A DNA stretch of 64,000 nucleotides, from contig NW_020846169.1 of NCBI RefSeq assembly GCF_003704095.1, forward strand, positions 186,001 through 250,000. Reading direction: 5' to 3'. Shown one piece after another: positions 4-60,100 of the stretch (the stretch's first letter is position 1; each line of letters starts with the position of its first letter). The notes under the pieces were generated by a model. That model had not been told where the DNA came from, did not search any database, and was given only the letters and a program-made list of their open reading frames with translations. Origin of the DNA: Pocillopora damicornis. Its lineage: Eukaryota. Made by a program: the position numbers and the translations under genes.

Positions 4-1795
4 CAGTATTTATTCCAATCCGCACTGAGAGTTTTCCTGTAGAGAACTGTGGCAGCTCCATTTCATCCACTGCCGTAAGCAAATCAAGCGCCATGCGAGC
101 TATTTGGTCAACGTGTTGAATGCCATTCCGTTCGGGAAGCCCAGATGCAACCATGTATGCATCACCAATGGTCTCCACTTTATATACGTCATAAGTATTG
201 ATGCGCTCATCAAAAACACCATACACGGCGTCTAGCATGCCTGTTACCTAAATCGATATATAATTTTTCGTCAGTATGGACCCTCGTCAGTACTCGGTTC
301 TAGCAAGCTAAGCATTGTATCTAGATTTGCTTTATCCTTAGAGAAATAAGAGACTTTCATCTCGTAGTTTTTTTGAGGTATTGTAGCCATACAGAAGTAG
401 CTTCCCTCCTTACAAAGTCTTTTCTGCCCATTCAGTAATGGTAGCACCCTTTCTTAGAAGGAGAAAAATCTCCCAAATTCTATTGAGCGTTAAAATGATT
501 ATTTAAACTCGTACCTGTAAAGGAGTCATGACAGAACACATCTCTGTAAAGCCGACGATGTCACTAAAAAATATTGTGACACTTTTAAAGTACTCGGCTG
601 GAACTTGCTGCTTTTTCTTAAGCATCTCAGCGACAGAATGAGGAAACATTTGGTAAAGGAGTGTATCTGCTCGCCTCTTCTCTTCTTGTAGCTCCAAGGT
701 CTTTTGTGCCAGCTTGAATGTGTAATTTTGAATCGTCCCGGTCATTCGGTAAACGGAAATTACCAGGAAGGGAATCAAAAGGAACGCAAAAATGAGAAAC
801 GACAATCGCATGGCCAAGTCTGACTTTTTAGATTTCTTTGTGTCTTCCAGGCGTTTTCTGAGGATGTCACCTGCATTATTTTGTACCTTGAACAACTTGT
901 TAAGGTACTTCGTCATGAGATCGAACCAATCTTCGCCTTTTTGTGATGACCCATTGCTGGCTTTGTTTGTGAAAATTACACTTCGGTTTTTCTCAATCGA
1001 AGCTAACAGGTCGTCGTTTACATTTTGATCTAACTCCATACTAATCTCGGGCATTAACATTCCACTCGACTTCAAGTATTCTCCTCCGAGTATACTGTGG
1101 TTTGCATAATACACAAGGTTTGTGTTGTTGAATTGTCCCTTTGCGAAAAAGGATCCACCAAGCGCTCGTTCTATGCCAATTTTATCCTTCCCGGTAAGGA
1201 ACATGTAGTATCCAATCATATCCACGTTGATCTCCTGGGAGGTATTTTTGATCGTGTCAAAGAACCAATCAAGCATCAAGTTGATTGGATGAGTATAGAA
1301 CTTAATTTGACCGTTCGGTTCGCCGCTTGTACAGTTCTCCCCAACATAATTCCTGTGAACCTTCAAATGTTCGTGAAAACGGTCGGCACTGGCAAGGAAA
1401 GGTGCAATGGATAGGTGCAAGAATGGCCACTCCGTTTCTTCCAGAGCCTTGTCCGTTTCTTTTCGGGCATTGTTCATTTTGTCGTAAACGCTTTGCGTTA
1501 TTTTTCCTGAACTTCGGGAACTGAGGCACAATACAGTAAGGCCACGCTCTATTTGCAAGCGATGAATAAGATATGCCACCTGAAGGCTTGATTGCAACTT
1601 ATCTTCCATTTCGCTTGCTAAATTAATACTCTTGTGTGCCTGGCGGACATCCTCAGCGACGAAGATGAGAAGGCCGAGCACGGCTATCATCGCCACACCG
1701 ATGATCTTCAGCGACTGCACGCGACGGCCAGCCGATGTGGTAACGTCGTATCGCCAGCATGAACGAAATAAGCCAGCCGCTTTATTGACTGCCAT
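4..1795 (-). CDS. NIT-domain transmembrane guanylyl cyclase (NIT-GC), 3'-partial; exons 1795-515 and 247-4
   Basis: Architecture is TM1 (IIGVAMIAVLGLLIFV), NIT motifs LIHRLQIERG and GKDKIGIERALG, TM2 (LSFLIFAFLLIPFLVI), signalling coil LQEEKRRADTLLYQMFP, then cyclase VTIFFSDIVGFT. A GT donor at 514-513 and AG acceptor at 249-248 lead into VTGMLDAVY...YKVETIGDAYMVASGLP...VRIGINTG, with the next donor at 3-2. An in-frame TGA just upstream supports ATG 1795; an acceptor at 1814-1813 suggests a 5'UTR intron. Confidence 0.93.
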
Positions 1796-4172
1796 TTGTG
1801 TAATTATTCAAACTAAAATATGAAAGAGAGAAAATTGAGTGACCTAGCTACTGACAGTCTATCTCCTTCCACCTGCTTTCGATTGAATTGCACTTCTATA
1901 ATCAACCCGTTGATTTGAAAATCGGTTCAGTAGATCGATATTTGTCAAAAAGATGGAGTATTTAATAACTAACAGTGCATGCACGAAGTCATTCAGACAA
2001 GAAAATTAAGATGTACAGTTTTTGATTAAAAAGAACGCTAAACTGAGTGGGAAGGCAGAATGAGTGTTACATTCACTCGAAGGAAAACAATTTTTTAAAA
2101 TTGAAATCATATACCATGAACAGATGATGTCAAATCTAGAATAGGAATGTTACGAGAGCAACAGATTAAAGGGGAAGCAGTAGCCCTAGAAGCTTGATGC
2201 CCCTCTTTTCGAACTTGAATAGCTTGCCATGAAAAAATGACAAAATAGAGAGAAAAAAGCACACTTCTTAGCCTGCGATCTTTCCACGTAAGTGTTAAGA
2301 CTACCTATTTCTAAAGTTTAACACATTTCTTTTTAACATGGAAATATTGACGATTGTTCACGACACACTCAGGAAAGTGTGAGACTAATCGGTAACGAGT
2401 GTTTTAATTTTAAGACTCAAAGCGCTAAAATACCGTATTAGTTTTTGCCCTACTCGGCAATAAACAAAGAGCTACGCGTACTGATAGTGACCAGATGCCT
2501 TTCTTCTTGAGTGTTCAGAAACGATTCTTTAACGTGCATTTTGCCAAACTAACTACTGCGCACGATGATTCTCGCGTTTAAGGATGCCTTAAAAATATCT
2601 CCTCGGAGCGAAAGCTATTTTTAAGAAACGAAACCATAGAATAATCCTTCACTTTGTAAACAAACCTCCGGCGAGATTTTTAAACTGCGGGGAATTTTCT
2701 CTCACTAATTAAAAAATGCGACTGAAATTTTGTACTTATCAATAGAGCATGACTCTATAAATCCAGATTTCGTCAAAGGTTTTTCATGTCAGGGTATCAA
2801 GAAAACTTTACATTTAAAAAATTCAGAATAAAAAGGAAATTACCTTCAAATCAATCCGATACCAAATTTTACAGAGTAAACTGCGTAGCTTCCGACTGTC
2901 ATCTCAATTTCCAAAAATTACACACTCCGACAAAAATGCTCAGTTTGAATTTCCAGCCTGTTTCTACATAACTACTCAGATTAGATTTGCAGTCAAACTT
3001 ACTGGTTCGTTAAAGTTGCTCAGATATGTTAACAATTGAAAATTTCGTTGTGTCACACTTGGTGATGTACTTGGCGCCTTCAGCATTTACAGAAAAAAGT
3101 GAAGGACGTTAATCGTAATTTTTGCACAAATTCAGCATGGGGCTTAGGCTATGAAAGTTCCCTTCTATAGCCTGTATTTTTGGATTGTTTTTTACCAGTC
3201 TCCTTACAGAATGCAGAGGAAGCTATGGTTTAAAATTCTAAATTTACATTTTCATATTTATGAATTACGGAGGAATCACAAATGTAATTGTAAGGATCGA
3301 TGTCTTAGCTAAAACAGGCAATTTTCAAACTTAAAAACAGCAGAAATCACTCACAAACACATCCATGCAATATAAGAACGTGTTTTGCGCGGTTAGTGCT
3401 GCTCCCTCCTGAGTACAAAGGGACCGCTAAACACCCTGAGCTAAAAACTCTAAACTTACCACTTTAAACCCTTCCTCCATTTTACCTTCAAACGTTTTAC
3501 GGTCGCTGAAGAAATTTTTTAGTAGGGTCTGTTTTTGTGAACTGCGTTTTCGCATCTTTCATAATAAGTGGAACTGCGAACACCTGTTTCGCCTTAATTG
3601 TCAAAGGTAAAGGCAATGAAACCTATGCAAATGAGTCCAAGAGAAATTGATATTAAAATATAGCTGCATGTCTTTGACTGAGCCAATTTGTTTCCACATA
3701 ATACCTGCGATTATAAAACTGATAGTAACGTCAGATGGGGCATATAACTAAAAACAATTACTTTCTTTCAGTTGTGAGACTCTTTTGTGCTCAAGAAGCT
3801 TTAGAAATTGTTAATGAATGTGATGTCCGTCCGCTTATCAGCCTTAAATGCCGAAATATTTAGTACTGGCAAATTAACATTCAGTTTCTCTTTAGAAAGC
3901 AGTGATCAGCAATTAACCAACTGTCTAAAGATAACCTAAAAATGCAACTTGTGTTTCTTGCGCTTCAAGCGACTGGGCTTTTGAAACCAAAGATTCAATA
4001 ACAACTTTTGTCATATCCAGAAAAGATTTCATCAATGAAGAGCAGTCTTAGCAAAAAACAGAATAATCCTTGCTTTGTATCAGGCCTTTCCTGTGAGTTC
4101 TTATCTGCGTCATTCGGTGACTAAACGCATTGAAACATCCTTATCAAGTAAAGGAAGCAAGCTTGCAGGGAA

Positions 4173-11720: not shown

Positions 11721-14700
11721 AAGTAAGCACTTTGCGAGAGAGAATTACAAACAACTCAACGAGTATAAAATACTTCAAGGGAAGAATTGTAAAGGTGTTA
11801 GACAGGTAGAGGATTCCACTGATTGTTATCACTTTGCCAATTAGACACCTTTGTGGCAGTTACTATTTCTTATGACATATATTAACACACTGGCTCTGAA
11901 TTACAGTTCACTTAAAAGAAAACATGCAACATTCATCTGCTTTAAAGCTGACAAAACAGCTTTCAAATTGCCATTAAACTGGTGGATTTCATTTTTTCGA
12001 AGTCAGTATACTAAACGTTTAGCTAAAGATGTTTCGGAAGGAAGCATAATGTAAATTAAACTATCCATTTTTAATATCGTTAAAAATCTTTCAATTATTC
12101 AGTTTTGCTTTGTTTTCATGGACTGATTCCTATCGTAACTTTGCTTGTTTCGACGGAAAATTAGCACTGAATGACAGCATCTTTCCTTTACTCGACGATC
12201 GATTCTTCGCCATCAGACCCCGATCTGTTTCCATCAACAATCAATTTGAGACTCCCTCTCCTTATAATAACAACATGGATTCGATAATAAATGAAATCGT
12301 TATCAAAAGTTATCATATGCAATATTTTCTCACCGTAATTTCCCAGCTCGCACTCTATAGAGGTCTATACATGACAATGGAAAAAGCTGCGTATAAAAAA
12401 CTTAAAAGAGTCACTCTCTCAGTAAAATGTCTTTTTATTTCCCAAACATCTCGCGGCACAGGGTCTCTACAATAATACATACTGTATCTGGTTTATGGAT
12501 ACCTTCCTTTTTTTATAAAAAATAAATATTTGACGTTTGTTTGCTTTGACTCAAGGCAATTTCATTTTCGCCGTTTTAAATTATCAACAATGATTATCAT
12601 AGATCGAGGATCGAAAAAAACTTTGATGAATCTAAATACCGTTGTGAAACCACTGTAATCATTCCTTTGGGTTTTTTTTTTTTTCAATCACCCAAACAAT
12701 TCAAATGCCAACTACTCTGGGTAAAAGCGAACAACTCATTCAGTGCATGGCATAACTCTTAATTCTGTTACAGCTAATAAATTTTGACAGACTACTCGGC
12801 TATCGCCTGTCGGTCATAATGCAGTCAAAATAGAAATATTTGGTTCAAAATTTGTGTTTATATAGATCACACCAAAAAATACACTTTCACCTCAATGCCT
12901 CTTGTGTTTTATCTGACAGTATTCATGCTTCTCACTGTTAATAAAGTTCTGATTTTTGTTGAAATCGCCAAAAAAGTTGTATTACTTTAAGTTCTTTACG
13001 AGGAATATGTAAAACAAGTTCTTCAAGCATGACCCTTTTAAAAATTTACTGTTAGTCAATGGTGAACTGCTCGTTAATCTTCTCTCTAATCGATGGAGAT
13101 GCAGAAGATGATTGAACCATCTTCACTGCTAAAGCACATAGTTACATTTTATAGCAATATAACTGAACGAATGAATATCGTGTTATGTTTCCGCCAATAT
13201 TTTTAATTTACGCACCTTTCGTAGATCGAATGTACCGTTCTGTGTGTTGTCTGTTTTTTCGTTAAAATGTAACCCAATTCGGAGCTCCTGAAATATATAA
13301 CATGATCATATTGGTGAATAGGTAGCTCTATGGAAGACATTCGTTATCATACCGATTAAAAATTAACATTTCACAGTACCTTCAAAAGCGACAGGCACCA
13401 GTATATACATGGGTATTGTATCGGCTGCAATAACATTCGGTGTCACAAATAGAAACCAATATACGGCCTTAAACAGCTGCTTATACAACCCTGAATCATT
13501 AATGACGGACTCCAGCGACGATGAAACCTGTGCCAGGTCTACAATAAGTTTTTATAGACTTTTAACTTGTGAGTTTGTATCAAATGATATCGATCTTGAT
13601 TTTGTACTGAGTCAATATTTTTTACTTTTGAAACAGGACTGTTTAACTTGAATGGATTAGCTTTCTTTGCCCTTGTGACAGATAGGCGTAACATTCTCGA
13701 AATTACTTCTAAATGTTATATGCTACAGCAATGGTGTGCTGATTAATCCCGATCACCGTCGATTGAAACAGCCTCAAATTGTATTATTTCACTTCAGTGA
13801 CCTTAAGCCATAATTTGACTAATTTGCATTAAGCGTCTTCGTAAGCTGACGAGAGACAATGTTCTAAAGTGACTATGATTTGACAGAATTCAGCTGGCTT
13901 ATTGAACAATTTAACAGAACTAGATGGCTATTAAAATTAAAATTGTTCCATTCCATAAAAAGTGAAAATAAAGTTTGAATTTAAGTAAAAAAAATTTACA
14001 GCTTTGACAGTTAAAACAATCGAAAGTTCATATTAGAGAACAGGCTCTTTTAAAGCAGCTATAATTACCATAATGAGTCATGCAAAGTCTTTTGGTAAGT
14101 TTACAATTTAAAAAACTCCCTTGGAGGAGGCTTTTCACTTTTAAGATACAAATCCTTAAATTCACAACACAAAATCTTACGTTCTGTAAGTTCTATCGAA
14201 TAATAATTACCATTAGAGATTTGACATATATTTCCTATCAAATGCCTTTGAAATTCTTAACCTTGGGCCTCTTTTCACCAAAAAAGAATTTCTTTCAGTT
14301 GCTAACAAAACACTGTTTCCATTAAAAAGGCTCTCTGTCTGATCCTTCTCGAGGGTTTTAAAATTTTTCCTGTCGACCGAGGTTAACTGAAACAGTTAAT
14401 TGCTTTCATAGTGCGACCGCTATAAAAGCGTTTCGATTGTCTTCTCAGACGACCCTGCCACACAAATAGTTAATCAACGTTGAAGTTGAGGGGTTTGAAA
14501 TTTGGATTTCAAATTATTCCTTTTCACTTTATCAGGGAAGTGATTTTAAAATTCTCTATCCAGCTTCTTGGAAGAAGAAAAGTTATACCCTTGGACTTTC
14601 CCCAATGATTATGAAAGATCTATGGCTAGATTCCTGGGTTTAAGCATGGTAACGAACTCATCAGCCTCAAACTATACATGTGTGATTCTGAAAAGAGAAT

Positions 14701-19888: not shown

Positions 19889-19988
19889 NNNNNNNNNNNN
19901 NNNNNNNNNNNNNNNNNNNNNNNNNNNNNNNNNNNNNNNNNNNNNNNNNNNNNNNNNNNNNNNNNNNNNNNNNNNNNNNNNNNNNNNN
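19889..19988. other. Assembly gap (100 N)
   Basis: Run of N. Confidence 1.
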
Positions 19989-20201
19989 CTATTTTCCCCT
20001 TTTACTTCTCTTCTCAATAGCTTCTAGTCTCGTTTTTACAACGTAACCGGTGGCACCTGAAAGCGCTGCGGCTGCTACTGCTTTACCACCAGCTATCAAA
20101 GCTAGAAAAAGAGCTGCCAAGGGTAACAATCCTCCTTTCTGTGATTTATTTCTTCTCATTTTTTTCTTTGCTAGTCGTTTTCTACTTTTCAACTTTGTCA
20201 T
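19989..20201 (-). CDS. Adenovirus pX-like basic core protein of the Polinton relic
   Basis: A K/R-rich N-terminus is followed by QKGG/LLPLAALFLALIAGG, which resembles the GG-cleavage site plus hydrophobic tail of adenoviral pX. Confidence 0.65.
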   Translation of the reverse strand: MTKLKSRKRLAKKKMRRNKSQKGGLLPLAALFLALIAGGKAVAAAALSGATGYVVKTRLEAIEKRSKRGK

Positions 20202-27128: not shown

Positions 27129-30100
27129 CTATTCAAATGTATCAACTGAAGAACTCTTGAAAGAATTTCGAAGATCCTATGGGAAAAAAAAGATAAATAA
27201 AAAATTACTTAACATAAAACCTTTCATTTATTTCAGGCCCCAGAATTTGACTCTAACTTGTAAGTTCGTTGAAAGTCCTCGCTTATTTTGTGCTGTGTTG
27301 ATAATTTGAAATCCTAAAAATCTCAGATTAATGTAACTCATCTCAAACATTGCTCTATAAAAGAAATTATTCGAAAGTAAAATTTACCAATGTTTTAAAC
27401 CGCTGACACATATGCATGCAGTCCTGTATAATAGGATGCTGGTATAAGAGGTGGAATGGAACGGCTTCTGTTTCCTCGGCACCAAGTTCCACAAACACAC
27501 CTGCCAAACGTTCCTGTTATAAATAATAAAAATAGTAAAAATAAAAACTTCAAGATCTTCTTCTAAAGAATGTGAGAACAAACATAAATCTAAAGGTAAT
27601 TTTGGTTTTATTAGTTGAGTTGATAATGTCGATGGCCACCGTTAACAGTTTCAAAGCTAAAGTTTTGGGCGTTGGACCTTCGTCAGAGCGAATGGGGGAA
27701 TTGTAGGTTGTGTGTGTGTTTTACATGCAGGAAATGGACCTACATTATTGGTGGGAACATGATGACGAGAATTTTCAAGAATTGTGCGGCTTTCCGAACT
27801 GCAATTCCCTTTTGTCATTTTCTTAGACTTAGTTGTAGTGATGACCCTGGTTTTTTCGACGAGTCAGAGGTAATGGTCCAGTTTTCCGAAAAAAAGTGGC
27901 TATCCTGTTTCAGTCAGTCAAGTGGGCCACCACCGCGCCCAACAAATTGATCGACAGTCAGCACTACAAACGGAACAGAAGGAAAATACCGATCGCAATC
28001 CATTCACTCGCACATTTCACCCTCACAACCACGTAGGTAAATCATCATTCCTTAAAACTTTAAATTACTTTTTAATGATTCAGAGACTGGTACTGTCTTT
28101 TCGAAACCTCCACTTATTTCATTGAAACGTTACAAAAAGATAGGCACCTATGTGGTCAGAAGTTCATCACAAACTAATGACCAACCCAGAACTTTCTAAT
28201 GCGCTCGCCTACGATGCAAAACCTGTCCTTTCATTCATAAAGTTGAGAAAATATTGATCCAAAGCATCCATTAAGATTACTGATCACTTCACGTGCATCT
28301 CCATCAAAGTCATCTCTAGCATACCTTGCACTATGTGCAAAAAGATATTCTTGGTAAAACAGATAGCCGACTAGGTGACCGATTCCGAGAACACCTTTGT
28401 GACGTAGAGAGGAATAACATGGACGCATCCAAACCAGTTGCCACACACGTTAATCTTTCTGATCATTCTAAGCAGCACATGGTAGTCTGCGGCCTTTCCT
28501 TACAAATGGGCAGTTTGGAAAGCCTCAAAACTTTTGAACAACAATTTATCTATCAAATCGGCACCCTTAATGCCCACGGTATCAACGAACGCTTGACATT
28601 TAAAAAATTTACTCCTGTTCATTGGAAACATGATGACACCCTCGGTTTTTACTCTCTTACCTTCGCAAATGTATCGTCTGGGTCAGCCGTAACATTAAGG
28701 CGATATGTATCTTCCCGTTGCCCTTCACCATGATGAAAAACCTGCCAATGGAGACAAAATTAAACAAAATGATTGAAAAAAGATTGGAACAAACCTGACT
28801 CTGATTCATGAGTGAAAAAAGCAAGGGATGGTACCTTCATTAGGTTGTCCAGTGTCACAAGTGAGTTCATTTCAGGTGGTGGTGAAGTGGGTTCCTGGGA
28901 TACAAGTCAATTTCATTAATAATTGTGCTTACTGTTCACCGCCCTGGTACTCAGCACGTGGACGAGGAAAGATTGTTAACTGGAACCAAAACCTCAACTA
29001 TCGCTATAGCTTTGAATAGGAAGCTTGCGTGCAAAATCGAGAGAATGATCGAAAAAATCAACCGTAATAAGTCGTTTGGATACCGTTGATAAGTACATTT
29101 TACATCTGCGAAACAGTGAAAATGTTATAACATTTACTTTGTCTGCCTATATAATTTTCTGTAATAACTTCTTTGAATGTTATGATTGCACTTTTCAGTC
29201 CTAAAATAAGTCCTTAATAATATTTTGTTGTTATGTTGTTCTTCTTCTTTCCTGTTTAACAGAGAAGAACACAGGAAATGCCCCACGTATGAATTAAATC
29301 CCATTCGCGCTTGAGAATGATTCCGTTCATAGATCATTTATACTTAGCGATGTTTTACAGACCTGGATTTGTGGGACACTGACGTCACCGCCATATTCTT
29401 CCGTCATTGGTTGAGGGAGATGAACTAAAGACTTGCTGGACGGCATTGGTTGGTTTGCAACAAGGCTCAGTCCTCGAAGAAAACCCTCTAAGGGGTCTGG
29501 GTCAACAGCAAAGTACAACAGCTGTTTGAAAAAGACGGGAAAACATTGAAATGGTCATGTTCAGTTTCCAAGTATTGTGAGTTTCACAGTATGACATATC
29601 CTCATCAAAATTTTCCGACAGATGAAAATATAAATATCCGGCCGGAAAAGGAAACCAGAATTCATCATGTTTATCAAAAGAAAACGGGCTAATATGCAAA
29701 GCAAAGGACCCTTTTTACTCGCAAACTTTTCTTTCCTGTTTCAAACGACAGCCTTTCCAAATATTTATTAAATATCATGGGGAANNNNNNNNNNNNNNNN
29801 NNNNNNNNNNNNNNNNNNNNNNNNNNNNNNNNNNNNNNNNNNNNNNNNNNNNNNNNNNNNNNNNNNNNNNNNNNNNNNNNNNNNGGCCTGTACGGGATTT
29901 GAACCCATGACCTCTGCAATATCGGTGCAGTGCTCTACCAACTGAGCTTACAAGTAAACTGGGAGCTGGTCACTATGTTGGTCCCAAAGAAACCAATGAA
30001 GTGATGAATAAATGATCGTGAACATATCATTGAAAATCATATATGTTCATTACTGCGAAGATCTCTTTCATATTCACGTCTTTATCCGCAGTTCGCATTC

Positions 30101-54100: not shown

Positions 54101-57100
54101 GCAGGAAAGAAAAAGCATGTGTCATGGTTTCATTCAACAGGATCTGCATCAATATTGTATCTTCTTATGAAGAAGTTGTGGTGTGCCTTGATTTGTTCTT
54201 CCGTCATAAGAATGTCTTTGTAAATGAGCAAAGTATGACAGTCAGAGTTTAAACCTTCATGAAAATTATCTTCATCTTGTTTTGAAAATTTCCCACATAC
54301 ATAATTATTATAACTAATTCTTCTTGCACTAAAGTTGAGAAGCCTTCTCCCATTACACTAGAAGGAGAATTTATTACAGCATCTCCATTACTATCCATAT
54401 TCCAGTGACAGCTGACAATTTTCCACTTTCCTCCTTCTGTTGGGTTTGCTTTTCTCTTAAATCCTGCTGAAGGTTTAACATCAATAGAAACAAACTTAAA
54501 ATCAGGTTTTTTTGTAAATTGAATAATTTTGTGTTTTCTCCAACAACAGTGAATGGTACATCCGGTCCTGATCAAGCAGTTTCTTGTATGTATTGATGTT
54601 CCATTTAAACTTCTCTTACATATCTTGATAACACTGAAGACATTTAAGATTTTAAGATCATTGATCAAATGAAGGTCAAAATGCCTATTTTCATCAAAAA
54701 AGAAAAAGTTTCTTGAATTGTTTTTTGAAGTTGACATTTTTGGTGTGAGTGAAATTTTATTTCAGTGGTCATTTGGATTGGCAAGATTGATGATCTTTTC
54801 ACTGTTCATATCTTTATCAGTTTCTTGAATTGATTCAACAGGATTGCTTGGGTCTGTGGAGAAACTAATTCTTTTTTATTCAAATGAATGAATTCCTTTA
54901 GGAGGTCACTCATTTCCAAGAGGAACACACTGTAGCTCTTCTCTGACAAAACAACTCTTTGGTCAATCCTTCGTGTAGTAAAAAACAGACTCGCCCTCAG
55001 AGACCAGATTGGATCTGTTGCTCTTCTTTGACCACCTTTCAGCTCACCAGCAGCATAGAGATATCTCACATTCTTTGAAGAGTCAAGTTTCTTTTTCTTT
55101 AGGCTAACTGGCCTTGAATAAGTTGTTGAACTCTTTGCATCAACCAACTTGTCTTTGATTGCATCAACAGGTTTCTTTCTAGTCAACCTGGTTATTCACT
55201 ATTCAACTTTACTGTATTGGAAAGTGAAGAGACATTCACCCAAAGTTCAATTAAATTGCCCAACAATTCCCTGATCTCTGTGAAAGGTCATATTCCCTCT
55301 TCTTATCTTCACATCATGCTTTGTCAGCTCTCTTGACATCACCCATGAATTCATGCCCAAGATCAACCTGAAGAACTTTGGGCCATCTCAGTGGTCCACG
55401 CTCACAGATTGTCTGAAAAGCCTTTGAGACCTCAGAAAATTCTTTTGAGGTGATTAATAAGGTTCAGCAGCCTTGAATCTGCTTGCAACATCAACAACAG
55501 TCAATGCATACCTGTAGAATTTCCACAACCTTGCAGTCACTTTGTCATGAGGGAGGAAAAGAAATTCAGCTTGGCAAGTTGCATTTGGAGATTTGACATC
55601 AAAAGTTTGTCTCAGGATATGCTTCAGGGCTGGCGAATAAATCTGCCAGATGGCTTGCTTCATCAGCCAAAGCTTTGCAACCTCCTCAGACACTCTGGCT
55701 TCATTAGCCAGCTTCTCACAGCTGGCAATCCCTTCCAGAAGCCTTAACTCTTAAAAGTTTTCTTTCCATTTTATCATAGTTTACAAGAAATGACTCGTAA
55801 CCAATCAATGCCATTCCTCAGCATAGATTATTTCACCTTGCTTTTGTTGAACACTTGGCTGGTAGAAGTCAGAAAGTTGTGGTTCTCTCAGATCAAGCTC
55901 TTGATTATACCCCTTGTTGTACAGCATCAAAGCATAATCTGTGTCCACCAAACTCTGTTTTGCCTGCTCCTTGACTCTGTCATTAGTTGCAATCCAATCA
56001 AGGAGCTTGTTTAATTTTATTGATACTTTTCATAAGCTGCTTGGTACTTCTCCACTGCAAGATCGTGTCTCTTCTTTTCTTAAACACTGTTCTAGTCTCC
56101 ACTCAAATACTTTGCAAGATAGCTTCCACAAACAAATGCAGTTGCATTGATGGGCACTCCTCCAATCATTATTGCTATGCTTGCCATTTTATTTATCTTC
56201 AACATTATTTTTTGAAAATTGACAACAAGTATTCATCATGAAACTTTGGACAAAGTTCTGCCTCTGCCTTGTTGATATAGAATATTAAGGCAGTCTCAAT
56301 GATTGTGTAGACTGCTGCTAACTTAATTGCATTCATTCAAATTGGCTGAACATTTTTAAGATGGCAAAATCTTTTGTTCTTCAAGATACCATTTTGCCGC
56401 GATTGATGCAGTGATTATGATGGTGACCCTAACATTGTTCATGAGATTTTAACTTGGATCAGAGGTCATTAGTTCTTCTCTTTGCAACTCATCTGATTCC
56501 AGTAGCAAATCCAGTCAAAGTGGCTGAATTGGTCAATGTCTTCATAAGCTTATTATCAGACATTTTATTTGGTAATCAGAAAAAAATCAATCCATCGACT
56601 TTACTCTCACAGGAATTTGACTTTGTGTGTTTTGCTATGTTTTACTTTGCTGTGCTTGAGCCTGTGGCTGTGGTTCATTAACGAGAGCCATCAACTCTTT
56701 TCTTTTTATAGTACAGTCCAGCCAGTGAGAGAATGACACTTGCCACTGAAAGAATTTGAGTGAGTGAGAATGATGATGTTTCTGGATCTGGTTCTGGTTA
56801 TAATCCTGCCCCTCTGGCATCTGGATCCTTTGGATCTTTGGATTGCTTTAAACCTCCTCTCTTCCTCATTTTCTCTCTCACTCTTTGGTTATGTTCAGCA
56901 TTTTTTGCCAACTGTGACACGCCCCGGGTCTTTATTTGGTCTCCTCTTATTTTTGTCAGTTTAAGTCACCTGTTAAGCCACTACGAGGCCTGGCGGAAAG
57001 TATTTACAAAGTATAAAGTATAAAATTATAAATTAATAAGAACTTGATCAGTTTCTTCAAAAGTACAATCTATTTCCTTATTATTGACCAAAGGTACTTC

Positions 57101-60100
57101 AACATTTTTGACAGTGGGAAAGCACTTGTGACTCCCTTTCATACTTCAGACTCAATCCACTGGCAATCATTCTAAGTTCTCTCTTTAGCATGAAGTTATC
57201 AGTCAAGTCCTTCAGAAGTTTTCCTTCATCAACAAGGAAAAAATGAGCTGATGTTTAACATGAGAGAGAGAGAAATGTATCAATCATTGCATCACAAGTC
57301 TTTGAAGACAAAGAAGCTTCATATCTCTTGAAGTATTTCTCAACATCTTGTTGAGTAAGCTTCTTGACTTGATCCTAGGTGAGAGATACACCAATCATTT
57401 TCTTTGCTTTACCACTTGCAACAAGAACGGCAAGTTGCTCTTGATGTTCTGAATCATTGGAGAGTTCAACCTTGAGAATGTTCAGAACATCATTAACAGT
57501 ATCTTTTTCATTATCAGACATCTCCATTTTATTTAAGAAATATTTTCATGAAAGTTCAAGATCAATGCAATAAGGATGGTGAAGTGAGGATATGAGATGT
57601 GAATACTTACCACTTTTTAGCATCGCTATTAATTACCTAATCCTTGAAAATGATCTTCCTATCCTTGGCAGATGGTGTGTAGAAGAGAACTAGTGCAGCA
57701 GTGGTCTCTCTGAATGGTTTTGCAATGCTTGTTATCTGTTGTGTGAGAACCTACACAGTGATTTCTTTATGTCTTGTGCAGAATGCTAAATTCATGAGTT
57801 CATTCGTCCTCTGCTTCTCTCCTCTGCATCTCTCAAAGCAGCACAATCATCAAGAATGATCATTTTCCTCATTTGCGTGTTTCCACTGAATAAGGAATCC
57901 TTTTGGTCTTCATGAATTACATTCTTCTATATTACAGCCTTCTTAGTCCCTCGACACTTTTTCTCCTCTTTTCCCTCAAACAAGTGCCTAATTTTCAGTG
58001 CTTTCTTGCATTGTTGACTAATCTCACACCCACACCATTCCTGATGTTTTCCATAGTTTTTCCAAAGACCACATTGTTCATCAACTTGAAAAACTCAAGT
58101 TAAGGGATGTATTTTGTTGGTTTTGTTTCCTCACAAGCTTCACCCATATATTTGTTGTTTGCCTGTGCAAAATAATTTGAGATCATGGAGATTCCTCCAC
58201 AAATTCCTATTTCAATCAGCAGCAGCATGTCAGGGTCACTCAATAGCTCAAGCTCAACATTTGTCACCTTTAATCTAGCATCCCAAGCCATTCCAGGAGC
58301 CATGTAATACCAGGCAGGGTCGAGCCCATAATTCTTATGACAGACATTTCTGAACTCTTCAAACACATCTGCAAGCAGGAGTAGGTCTGTCTTAAGATAA
58401 AGGTCATGGTAATCACCCATCATCTTCATTTTTAACTCTTTCCAGGCCTTCTGTGCATGCTCATAGTCTTCAGAGATATCACAGTCATTCAGCTTAGAGT
58501 AGAGCTTATCTTTAGGTGGTAGTTCCTCAAAGTTTTTGATACTATCCATGTAGTTATATGGATAAACCCCCTTTCTTGATATCAACTCAATTGCAGCTAT
58601 GTTGTCTGACCCTCCAGGGCTTTTGTCCTGCCGTGCAACAGCATGGCTGACTGCTTACCCCTACAGACCCTGGCTAAAGGCTTACCCCTGCAAGCCCTGG
58701 CTGAAGGCTTTTAAGACCTTCTTGGTTTGTCTTGGATTACCTTGACTAAAATTACTAATTTTTCAAGGAATGAAGGCATGCACCTGAAGCTGTTGATAAA
58801 GCAAAGCTCAATCTCGACTTCAGCTTCTTTATCTTCTTTGTTGATGTACGGGCCAGCAACGACTTCTTTACTAAAGCTGATGTACTTTTCTTTGTTCTTG
58901 GGAATGCATTTGATGTTTCCCTTGCTTTTACAGCCTGCCCAAAGGGTTGCTCAGATTCTTAATGAATAGATGAGAGTCATAACCAGTCAATTTGTTAATA
59001 ATGACAGGAATGAGCTTCAGCTTCTTGAATTGTAGGTTGCATTTGTAGTAAGCTGCTCTGCGACACTTCCCTGTGAAATGGCAGTGGTCTCTCAGTTTGC
59101 CTTCATTAAGTGCAGATCCAGCTGTGTGTTGCATCATTGAACTCACACCTTTCTTCATCTGTGAAGTTCATCTTCTTGGCAAAGTCGAATTCGTTATAAA
59201 TCTTCTTGATTTTCTCCTCAAGCATTTCAACAAAGATCTGACCAACATCTTCATCCTTGCTCTTTACCCTATAGATAACTGGCGCTTGTGAATAAAGCTT
59301 ACTATCAAAGAAAACAATGTGATAGCTGATCCCACCTGGTTTCTGCTTTTGATACTGATTAGTGAAGTTCTTATCACTGCTTAGCTCACAATTACTCATT
59401 TACTTAGTAGAAGAATCAAACTCAACATAAACCACAAAGTTTACTCCTACTGAGCGGTTATGATTCTTTAATTTGATTACACTACCCTCATCTGGCATCT
59501 CAATCCTGTCTGCCTCCTTCCTTGAGAAATACTCTTTATGGAGTGCATGCTTTTCTTTGCTTGAGAAGTGATTCAGACACCTGAGACAATATTGTTGTGC
59601 TTTGAGGTTTGACACGATAGTCTGCTCATGTTGTTTATCAGGCAGTAGTGTTTCTTTTCATCATCTGCTATCAGAAGGTTGGTGACATGCTTCTTTTTAT
59701 TCTGCCACTCTACAGCCTTGCCAAAGGCTTGCCCCATTGAGGCCCAGCCAAAGGCTTACTTCATTATCCTCATTGGATAAAAATCAAGCCTTCAGCCAGG
59801 CGTCAAAGAAGCTTGTTCATTACCAAGCACGTTTACTGCAATGTTTTCTTCTTTCATTGTGCAGCTTGCTAGGGAAGTTAATGCCACTCCAGTCAAGCTT
59901 CTCAGATTATGCTTTGAGAATCTTTGTGATCCTTTGAAGGTTTTTTTCAACTGTAAGCACTCTTGTTATCAACCACTTGAAACAATGATTATCTGCATTT
60001 TTAATATTTACAACTGCTTTCTTACTTTTAATGAATTCTAGGAGTTCACCGTAAGAGCTGCTGTATAATGGTCTGTATCATGTTCCAAGGAGGTAAATGA

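Follow-up and report, generated by a model that had tools for sequence, protein, structure and literature searches.

The NIT domain is mainly a bacterial one, and the guanylyl cyclases that carry it in animals (NIT-GCs) are a recently recognized alternative to haem-based soluble guanylyl cyclases in animal nitrogen-oxide signalling. Animal NIT-GCs with a two-transmembrane (TM) topology and a conserved arginine pair, corals included, were published in 2020 (Moroz et al., Sci Rep 10:13020, PMC7400543), and the supplementary list of that survey contains Acropora millepora XP_029189452 as well as Exaiptasia entries. The only family member with functional data is Platynereis dumerilii NIT-GC1 (bioRxiv 10.1101/2023.08.02.551600), in which an NO donor leads to cGMP and the NIT domain is required (Jokura et al., 2023; bioRxiv 10.1101/2023.08.02.551600; eLife RP91258), in an assay that could not tell NO apart from nitrite or nitrate (bioRxiv 10.1101/2023.08.02.551600). 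Our literature search for studies of coral or cnidarian NIT-GCs found only the 2020 survey (PMC7400543), and no characterized cnidarian member. The first-pass annotation of the DNA considered here, which had such proteins as reported in some marine invertebrates, was right that the family is known and understated how much is known of it, as the survey already has the corals, the topology and the arginine pair, and the annelid protein has cGMP data. Because the family had been published with its coral members, the locus described below is not a discovery of a new system.

In the window, by which we mean the whole 64,000-nucleotide stretch of Pocillopora damicornis DNA that was analysed, lies the start of a minus-strand gene whose 591-aa product (P0001) is in all probability a NIT-domain receptor guanylyl cyclase working as a nitrogen-oxide-responsive homodimer. 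The protein begins with a basic N-terminal tail, followed in order by TM1, NIT, TM2, a coiled coil and a complete class III cyclase. Exons were searched singly, and P0001 stood for the whole protein; on it, Pfam found both of the domains that the first-pass annotation had put forward for checking, NIT (E 1.2e-24) and Guanylate_cyc (aa 399–583, E 4.2e-65), together with the HNOBA coil, and no other domain. Kinase-homology and ANF-receptor domains had no match on P0001 (PF01094, PF07714, PF00069), and the coil begins only 4 residues past TM2, in agreement with the earlier view that the sensor joins the cyclase with no kinase-homology domain in between. The HNOB haem domain (PF07700) likewise had no match on P0001, where only the last 39 HNOBA positions, those of the coil, were matched.

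Database matches spanning most of the query were animal proteins with NIT and Guanylate_cyc, and the named homologs include those of Oculina (68% identity), Porites (61%) and Montipora (57%), with Haliotis and Trichoplax at about 30%. In a quick maximum-likelihood tree (IQ-TREE, with SH-aLRT support only and bacterial NIT proteins left out), read with the long-branch rows P0099, P0102, P0090, P0080 and P0094 set aside in its interpretation, the gene falls in a coral clade with 100% support, which is sister (99%) to a second cnidarian clade. The N-terminus of the Acropora millepora entry of the 2020 list matches P0036, a member of the same clade as the present gene. Judged by sequence comparison, then, the coral protein is a well-supported member of the published animal NIT-GC family and groups with metazoan NIT-GCs. 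Like the NIT-GCs of Trichoplax and Hoilungia (PMC7400543), it has NIT (PF08376) between two TM helices, a C-terminal PF00211 and the arginine pair, at 28–31% identity to the Trichoplax proteins, and like the NIT-GCs of that survey in general its cyclase is of the membrane-receptor (ANPR) type. It comes from another species, its place is in one of two sister paralog clades that are specific to cnidarians, and cnidarian members carry a glutamine, Q537 (SRMQ), at a position that is a glutamate (SRME) in GC-A, GC-C and most members from bilaterians. With Platynereis NIT-GC1 it shares membership of one family, by that protein's authors' own phylogeny (cnidarians included), and the combination of NIT and cyclase with no haem domain. 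That likeness is drawn from the published description, in whose domain figure NIT-GC1, unlike the coral protein, has only one predicted TM region. NIT-GC1 serves neurons of a UV-avoidance circuit, a role that a coral protein need not share.

The sensor itself is readily recognized. The NIT domain (aa 76–310; 866..1570, minus strand) scores 88.6 bits against a gathering cut-off of 24.9 (Pfam PF08376, E 1.1e-24) and covers profile positions 2–236 of 239; a six-frame scan of the genome gave a NIT match of 90.4 bits at C2804:186866-187570. An AF2 model (mean pLDDT 84.7) has as its sole significant fold match in the PDB the NasR protein of Klebsiella oxytoca (4AKK; Foldseek E 1.9e-6, probability 1.00, TM 0.53–0.60; next match E 0.06), which is also matched in sequence (E 1e-4), so that the comparison with bacterial NIT structures suggested on first pass came out as expected, and on this model the fold is a double four-helix-bundle NIT sensor of the NasR type. 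Both arginine motifs that had been called intact are present, QIERG at aa 81–85 (R84 at 1544–1546, minus strand) and GIERA at aa 207–211 (R210, with E209, at 1166–1168, minus strand). Among 27 family members from six phyla these two ER motifs are the most conserved positions of the ectodomain, with Q81, E83 and R84 invariant and G207, E209 and R210 kept in at least 90%. They also align with the pocket arginines of NasR: R84 with the arginine of ‘LQCERG’, and E209/R210 with ‘QERALG’, whose E175/R176 (native numbering) belong to the nitrate pocket that has been proposed (PMC7496416; PMC9581486). R84 and R210 may thus line a putative anion pocket between the two bundles.

The bacterial relatives differ in what the sensor is attached to. 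While NasR has the same fold and the two ER motifs of its proposed nitrate/nitrite pocket, it is a one-component regulator, soluble in the cytoplasm, that acts through an RNA-binding ANTAR output, and is about 19% identical to the coral protein, which is membrane-embedded and has a cyclase output. In overall design, as compared through the literature, the coral protein resembles NarX/NarQ and the NIT chemoreceptors, where a TM helix, a four-helix-bundle anion sensor and a second TM helix lead by a continuous helix to a dimeric output (PMC8199190, PMC7247690). In those proteins, however, a histidine kinase or MCP output is reached through a HAMP domain, whereas the coral protein has no HAMP and its helix runs straight into the coil.

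The placement of NIT between two TM helices, as read on first pass, held up. Only two segments rise above threshold on the Kyte-Doolittle scale (19-residue, threshold 1.6), and they flank the NIT domain: TM1, or a signal anchor, at about aa 29–47 (core about aa 31–47; 1655..1711, minus strand; maximum 2.69), and TM2 at about aa 331–349 (749..805, minus strand; maximum 2.6). The AF2 model places TM1 within one continuous helix (aa 21–95) and TM2 within another (aa 284–383). Since the cyclase must be cytosolic and the two TM segments flank NIT, we infer that the NIT domain lies outside the cell or in an organelle lumen, with the tail and the cyclase in the cytosol. This orientation draws further on the basic tail (6 K/R vs 1 D/E in the 30 N-terminal residues before TM1) and on the sequon at N281, kept in 10 of 13 aligned cnidarian sequences. 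The several N-x-S/T sequons remarked on earlier come to six in the stretch from TM1 to TM2, where shuffles that preserve composition give 2.8 ± 1.5 (P about 0.04), and the cytoplasmic part has one. The segment directly before TM2 is strongly basic, and its 7 K/R in 18 residues sit poorly with the positive-inside rule in its simple form; it is also conceivable that TM1 is a signal peptide that is cleaved off and not an anchor.

Beyond TM2, the coiled coil or signalling helix (aa 354–392; 620..736, minus strand; C-terminal part of Pfam HNOBA, E 6e-7) aligns to the coil of GC-A (E 1.4e-15) and leads into a cyclase that is complete, as it covers PF00211 profile positions 2–182 of 183. Its start (aa 399–427; 515..601, minus strand; PF00211 positions 2–31) contains D412 in FSDIVGFT, and the profile is also found on single exons (exon 2, E 1.9e-20; exon 3, E 6.2e-13). 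The two metal-binding aspartates and the guanine-specifying glutamate noted on first pass are where they were said to be, in SDIVG (aa 411–415), GDAY (aa 455–458) and KVETIG (aa 450–455). D412, the first metal-binding Asp, is invariant in the family alignment (A1), and exon 2 carries E452 for guanine specificity, D456 as the second metal Asp, and R503. The specificity Glu/Arg/Cys correspond to E452/R522/C524 and the transition-state Asn/Arg to N531/R535, an assignment of roles that reportedly follows mutagenesis of RetGC-1 and sGC, said to be that of Tucker in 1998 and Sunahara in 1998. D412, D456, E452, R522, C524, N531 and R535 all lie in blocks identical to the active GC-C and GC-A, and by these alignments the catalytic and guanine-specificity residues are all in one chain. 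We rejected an adenylyl cyclase, as the residue blocks match GC-A/GC-C and the guanine-specificity residues are present.

Among solved structures, GC-A (NPR1) and GC-C come nearest to the coil and catalytic domain (E 1.4e-15, 2.7e-18 and 1.5e-13 on separate exons). They share identical catalytic and specificity motifs with the coral protein, and they are homodimeric, with single-chain active sites. On the other hand, GC-A and GC-C have an ANF-receptor ectodomain, a single TM segment and a kinase-homology domain, none of which occurs in the coral protein.

Taken as a mechanism, the reading that we favour would run as follows. The protein would act as a parallel homodimer, with a small nitrogen-oxide ligand (nitrite, nitrate, NO or an NO-derived species) bound at the Arg84/Arg210 pocket between the bundles. 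Binding would shift a long helix that takes in the last helix of NIT and TM2 and passes without a break into the coiled coil, and this shift would realign the two catalytic domains and so change cGMP synthesis. By analogy, the closest tested precedent for such a mechanism is Platynereis NIT-GC1, which gave cGMP on an NO donor only with its NIT domain.

Would the coral use such a receptor to monitor nitrogen? The protein could sit at the cell surface or face the symbiosome and there sense inorganic nitrogen (nitrate or nitrite, taken from seawater or passed between host and alga) or nitrosative stress, tying host cGMP to the state of the symbiosis. Its pocket residues are those implicated in nitrate/nitrite binding by NasR, its topology places NIT outside the cytosol, its closest named homologs are from corals, and poly-A libraries of adult type, made in several studies, contain its transcripts. 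However, the family is also found in non-symbiotic molluscs, annelids, echinoderms, insects and placozoans, and so did not arise for the sake of symbiosis; such functional data as exist point only to neuronal NO signalling, and the literature that we searched links no NIT-GC to coral physiology. We therefore consider this role unlikely.

A contrary possibility is that NIT has lost nitrogen-oxide sensing, binds some other small anion or none at all, and serves chiefly as a dimerization scaffold in a cyclase controlled from the cytosol, perhaps by Ca2+-sensor proteins, by phosphorylation or through the conserved N-terminal tail. Retinal guanylyl cyclases, among other receptor guanylyl cyclases, are regulated from inside, and in the NIT-GCs a cytosolic motif directly before TM1 (T..G-R/K-R.Q) is kept across phyla and hints at intracellular regulation. 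Yet ectodomain conservation is strongest precisely at the pair of ER motifs proposed to form the anion pocket, which makes a mere scaffold hard to argue, and deletion of NIT abolished the NO-donor response of Platynereis NIT-GC1, so that this reading too seems doubtful to us beside that of a ligand-responsive homodimer.

The homodimer finds some backing in modelling. A model of two copies of aa 325–591 reached an ipSAE of 0.56, against 0.00 for the best control; the runs share at least 90% of contacts, with a partner pLDDT of at least 81, and the coil contacts are parallel and in register. The mark used for ipSAE was reached by 21 of 30 one-chain-pair structures and by 0 of 23 single-chain structures when applied to microbes, and by 7 of 16 when applied to animals, and the pass may reflect the modelling's memory of solved GC dimers and is also compatible with heterodimers formed with the paralog described next. 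The genome scan found exactly two NIT loci, the second being a NIT-GC paralog on contig C1602; the two paralogs fall in the sister cnidarian clades, and both clades are retained in other corals. Such a pair would suit a protein active only as a heterodimer with its paralog, as sGC alpha/beta are. In obligate heterodimers one half of the active site is lost per subunit, whereas here both halves (the metal Asp, and the E/R/C with the N/R) are in this one chain and the homodimer model passes its controls, which makes an obligate heterodimer improbable.

As for this receptor and its paralog together, it would be quite a long shot to take the reef-coral pair as the host's extracellular or symbiosome-lumen sensor that turns nitrite, nitrate or NO-derived species into cGMP, but if true this would offer an entry point to nitrogen-dependent symbiont control and NO-linked bleaching. 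Platynereis has 15 such genes and Trichoplax 12, which makes the coral, with only two paralogs, the simpler system to study.

The gene model extends well beyond what was first drawn. The first-pass annotation placed the feature at 4–1795; NIT-GC coding sequence is indeed there, but it is not the whole gene, as this interval holds coding exons 1 and 2 only, with a 267-nt intron between them, and three further coding exons past the window's left edge finish the cyclase domain. All of the named motifs and domains read on the minus strand, and we rejected both the plus strand of the interval, where stops occur throughout the frame read, and a single continuous reading frame, since the 430-aa ORF runs into the intron (tail ‘...QVRV*’). 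Altogether the gene has at least six exons and a CDS of 1776 nt, in frame for 591 aa, and the introns of the exon model are all GT..AG. Coding exon 1 (515..1814, minus strand), placed by its ORF, the alignment of transcript contig L006 and an RNA joint (3244->3512, cut +3), has 19 nt of 5'UTR, an ATG at 1795, 427 codons ending in phase 0, and a GT donor at 514–513. The intron that follows (248..514, minus strand) is joined in RNA runs X1, X5 and X18 and not in the DNA-like run X19, and P0001 is continuous across it, from residue 427 to 428. Coding exon 2 (4..247, minus strand; RNA joint 1600->3003) encodes aa 428–508, 100% identical to P0001, and the first base of codon 509, and its donor G/GTAAGT sits across the window edge. 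Outside the window, coding exons 3 (L002 8601..8503), 4 (L002 7778..7687) and 5 (L002 7454..7395, with the stop) are exact matches in P0001; the codons for G509 and P542 are split, and the 3'UTR reaches at least L002 7223. In the other direction, a 5' non-coding exon of at least 74 nt (13216..13289, minus strand) matches nt 1–74 of L006 (98.6%), has a GT donor (‘aaag/gtgcgt’) and is spliced to 1814 over an 11.4-kb intron; it is backed by RNA contigs of X1, X5 and X18 that have loose ends at L005 4814. A single RNA run also suggests where another 5' exon might end (3461..3490, minus strand): an X1 contig has 30 loose nucleotides at L005 4813, which match the window once where 0 matches are expected by chance.

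Poly-A RNA contigs of three studies are joined across each of the four coding introns, while the DNA-like run X19 covers the locus along its length and has no spliced joints. The RNA runs are contigs, which show transcription and not its strength or cell type. L006 and P0001 agree with the gene model, apart from 6 allelic substitutions. The NIT-GC locus is an intact, transcribed coral gene. A non-working locus (a pseudogene, a chimeric assembly or a bacterial contaminant with a NIT sensor), which the mainly bacterial distribution of NIT and the cutting of the gene by the window edge might bring to mind, is scarcely credible in view of five coding exons that are spliced at GT..AG introns and keep a frame of 591 codons open, the poly-A transcripts of three studies set against an unspliced DNA-like run, and orthologs in other corals at 57–86% identity. 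The locus supplies a fully validated gene model from a coral, in which the exon boundaries, the 5'UTR exon and allelic variants are known, together with a confident sensor model and its pocket residues, and it is directly clonable for ligand and cGMP assays.

Elsewhere in the window, three other long ORFs (58100–58585, 28326–28733 and 54249–54737) matched no Pfam family, and a run of N lies near 19.9 kb.

The first-pass annotation placed a TM-NIT-TM-coil-GC receptor at positions 4-1795 of the window, which corresponds to G000:C2804:186001-250000; our analysis confirmed this observation, far beyond chance. Its left limit is the true end of coding exon 2, where a consensus donor (G|GTAAGT) spans position 4; the interval is not a single ORF, however, and holds two exons of a minus-strand gene, split by an intron. 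On the plus strand, the frame read across 4-1795 has stops throughout. On the minus strand, an ORF that starts with ATG spans window 1795..503; its coding part stops with codon 427 (window 515), where there is a GT donor, and coding picks up at window 247, past a 267-nt intron, so the interval consists of the first two coding exons and the intron between them. Three short minus-strand exons in the flanking DNA (exon 3, L002 8601..8503; exon 4, L002 7778..7687; exon 5, ending in the stop, L002 7454..7395) supply the rest of the cyclase domain. Together the five coding exons total 1776 nt (591 codons plus stop); every intron is GT..AG, and G509 and P542 are split codons. Alignment of L006, a transcript contig, to the genome placed a non-coding 5' exon on the minus strand (window 13289..13216), joining window 1814 across an 11.4-kb intron, and one RNA run gave a possible alternative 5' exon with its end at window 3461. 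Inside the intron that separates coding exon 2 from coding exon 3, the depth of X19, a DNA-like sequencing run, climbs from ~6 to a maximum of ~890 and loose ends are numerous (L005 2340-2880, C2804:185340-185880), suggesting a high-copy repeat there.

The gene is intact and expressed. A word-based protein search found P0001, a 591-aa protein called on L006, itself a 2039-nt intron-less Logan contig from an RNA run. P0001 contains the translations of exons 2-5 without a mismatch, and exon 1 shows allelic differences at six of 427 residues: five are conservative, and the other makes the N154 sequon polymorphic (codon 154, window 1334-1336), the P0001 allele having Asp and losing the sequon. Parts of the locus are present in 23 public runs. 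Onto L005, which includes flanking DNA of the locus, we mapped contigs from X19 and from three poly-A RNA runs, each of a different study. In all three RNA runs, joints fell precisely where the four coding introns are predicted, with CT..AC ends (GT..AG on the minus strand); X19, which covers the locus along its length, had none of them. As the RNA data are contigs, they establish that a spliced mRNA exists rather than its abundance or tissue.

The Pfam search that the annotation had proposed matched both NIT and Guanylate_cyc; exons went into searches one at a time, and P0001 stood in for the complete protein. Exon 1 contains the NIT domain (aa 76-310, E 1.1e-24), an HNOBA C-terminal coil (aa 354-392) and a match to the first 30 positions of the Guanylate_cyc profile; exons 2 and 3 each match that profile alone, and P0001 carries the complete cyclase domain (aa 399-583, E 4.2e-65). 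The same search of P0001 found no ANF receptor, kinase-homology domain, HNOB haem domain or any further domain, in agreement with the direct joining of NIT to cyclase first described. The two flanking TM helices were also recovered, as the only segments exceeding a Kyte-Doolittle value of 1.6 over 19 residues (cores ~aa 31-47 and ~aa 331-349, read from the sequence). The several N-x-S/T sequons number six over the 281 residues of the ectodomain, where shuffles gave 2.8 ± 1.5 (P ~0.04); that at N281 is kept in 10 of 13 cnidarian sequences, and six of the eight members of the studied gene's clade keep that at N223. The 30-residue N-terminal tail holds six K/R against one D/E. An N-in, NIT-out, cyclase-in topology would fit this basic tail, the access of the cyclase to cytosolic GTP and the two TMs between cyclase and NIT, with the caveat that the 18 residues preceding TM2 are likewise basic (7 K/R). 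Immediately N-terminal to TM1 is a cytosolic motif, C-W-R-Y-D..T..G-R-R-x-Q (aa 13-30, window 1706-1759, minus strand), near-invariant in the coral clade; NIT-GCs of molluscs and placozoans share a shortened version of it, T..G-[RK]-R-x-Q. The NIT-GC literature that we found makes no mention of the motif, which may serve in regulation or trafficking.

An AlphaFold2 model of the exon 1 product, built on a 27-sequence alignment, is all-helical (mean pLDDT 84.7); aa 21-95 and aa 284-383 each form one very long helix that extends without a break from the sensor through TM1 or TM2, respectively. The proposed comparison with bacterial NIT structures gave one significant PDB match by Foldseek, Klebsiella oxytoca NasR (4AKK; E 1.9e-6, probability 1.00, TM 0.53-0.60; next E 0.06), which to our knowledge is the only NIT domain solved; 4AKK was also the sole match in a sequence search with the ectodomain (E 1e-4). 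Both Arg motifs called intact at first reading align with NasR pocket residues: R84 with the 'LQCERG' Arg, E209/R210 with the E/R of 'QERALG' at 4AKK chain index 202/203. The latter would be native E175/R176 if the deposited chain has a 27-residue tag (numbering in PMC7496416), and by the same offset the first Arg would be native R50. These are the NasR residues proposed for nitrate binding (PMC7496416; PMC9581486). The alignment of 27 members shows no variation at Q81, E83 and R84, and at least 90% of its sequences retain G207, E209 and R210.

In the cyclase, the FFSDIVGFT, DVYKVETIGDAYM, RIGIxTGP and KMPRYCLFGDTVNTASRM blocks equal human GC-A and GC-C at every functionally assigned position, and the two metal-binding Asp and the guanine-specifying Glu are kept, as annotated. 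The positions are D412 and D456 (metal binding), E452, R522 and C524 (guanine specificity) and N531 and R535 (transition state), roles that rest on established mutagenesis. All of these residues lie in one chain, so that two complete sites can arise in a homodimer. Modelled as a homodimer, aa 325-591 reached an ipSAE of 0.56 (best control 0.00), passing a mark that, among microbes, 21 of 30 proteins with structures of one-chain pairs attained and 0 of 23 solved as single chains, and that 7 of 16 attained among animals; because GC dimers have already been solved, this pass is a likeness and not independent proof. Runs agreed in at least 90% of contacts (partner pLDDT at least 81), and the modelled contacts are those of a parallel, in-register coiled coil (aa 352-383), with the specificity loop located at the catalytic interface. 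Both cnidarian NIT-GC clades have SRMQTTG (Q537, L002 8510-8512, outside the window), versus SRME in GC-A, GC-C and most bilaterian NIT-GCs aligned.

The mechanism we favour combines parts found in this analysis, and its workings we infer: a ligand would bind the R84/R210 pocket, and the signal would travel along the continuous helix, via TM2 and the coiled coil, to the homodimeric guanylyl cyclase. NIT-GCs are better documented than the annotation's mention of some marine invertebrates suggests. Placozoan NIT-GCs share exactly the architecture of the coral protein, and their conserved Arg pair was noted and their NIT modelled on 4AKK; the same survey reported NIT-GCs in many phyla and in related anthozoans, including corals, and none in Nematostella (Moroz et al., 2020; PMC7400543). 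An Acropora millepora protein in its supplement matches at its N-terminus P0036, a database protein of the studied gene's clade. Platynereis NIT-GC1 mediates retrograde NO signalling to photoreceptors, and in COS-7 cells an NO donor led to cGMP production only with NIT present; the authors could not rule out that nitrite or nitrate is what the protein actually binds (Jokura et al., eLife RP91258; bioRxiv). As this type of system is already known, the coral gene is a further, well-documented NIT-GC member. Our literature search found no functional study of any cnidarian NIT-GC; the role in symbiosis or nitrogen sensing that the annotation suggested for this one is a hypothesis.

The proteins matched along most of the query's length come from animals and combine NIT with cyclase, among them scleractinian relatives (Oculina 68%, Porites 61%, Montipora 57% identity) and, at 23-33%, proteins of molluscs, echinoderms, annelids, an insect and Trichoplax. 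The genome holds two NIT loci, the studied gene and C1602:28683-29378. The second paralog (ORF 853-2439 of L003, G000:C1602:27183-30878, minus strand) is 40% identical and has the same architecture; it lacks the 267-nt first coding intron, its first coding exon being uninterrupted, and the following cyclase exon is visible at L003 428-760. In a quick ML tree the paralogs fall in sister cnidarian clades (support 100% for each clade, 99% for their union), indicating duplication within cnidarians.

Elsewhere in the window, three isolated ORFs of 135-162 aa (58100-58585, minus; 28326-28733, plus; 54249-54737, minus) had no Pfam match, and the first two look like mobile-element fragments. Another ORF, near window 19890-19995, is broken by a run of N.
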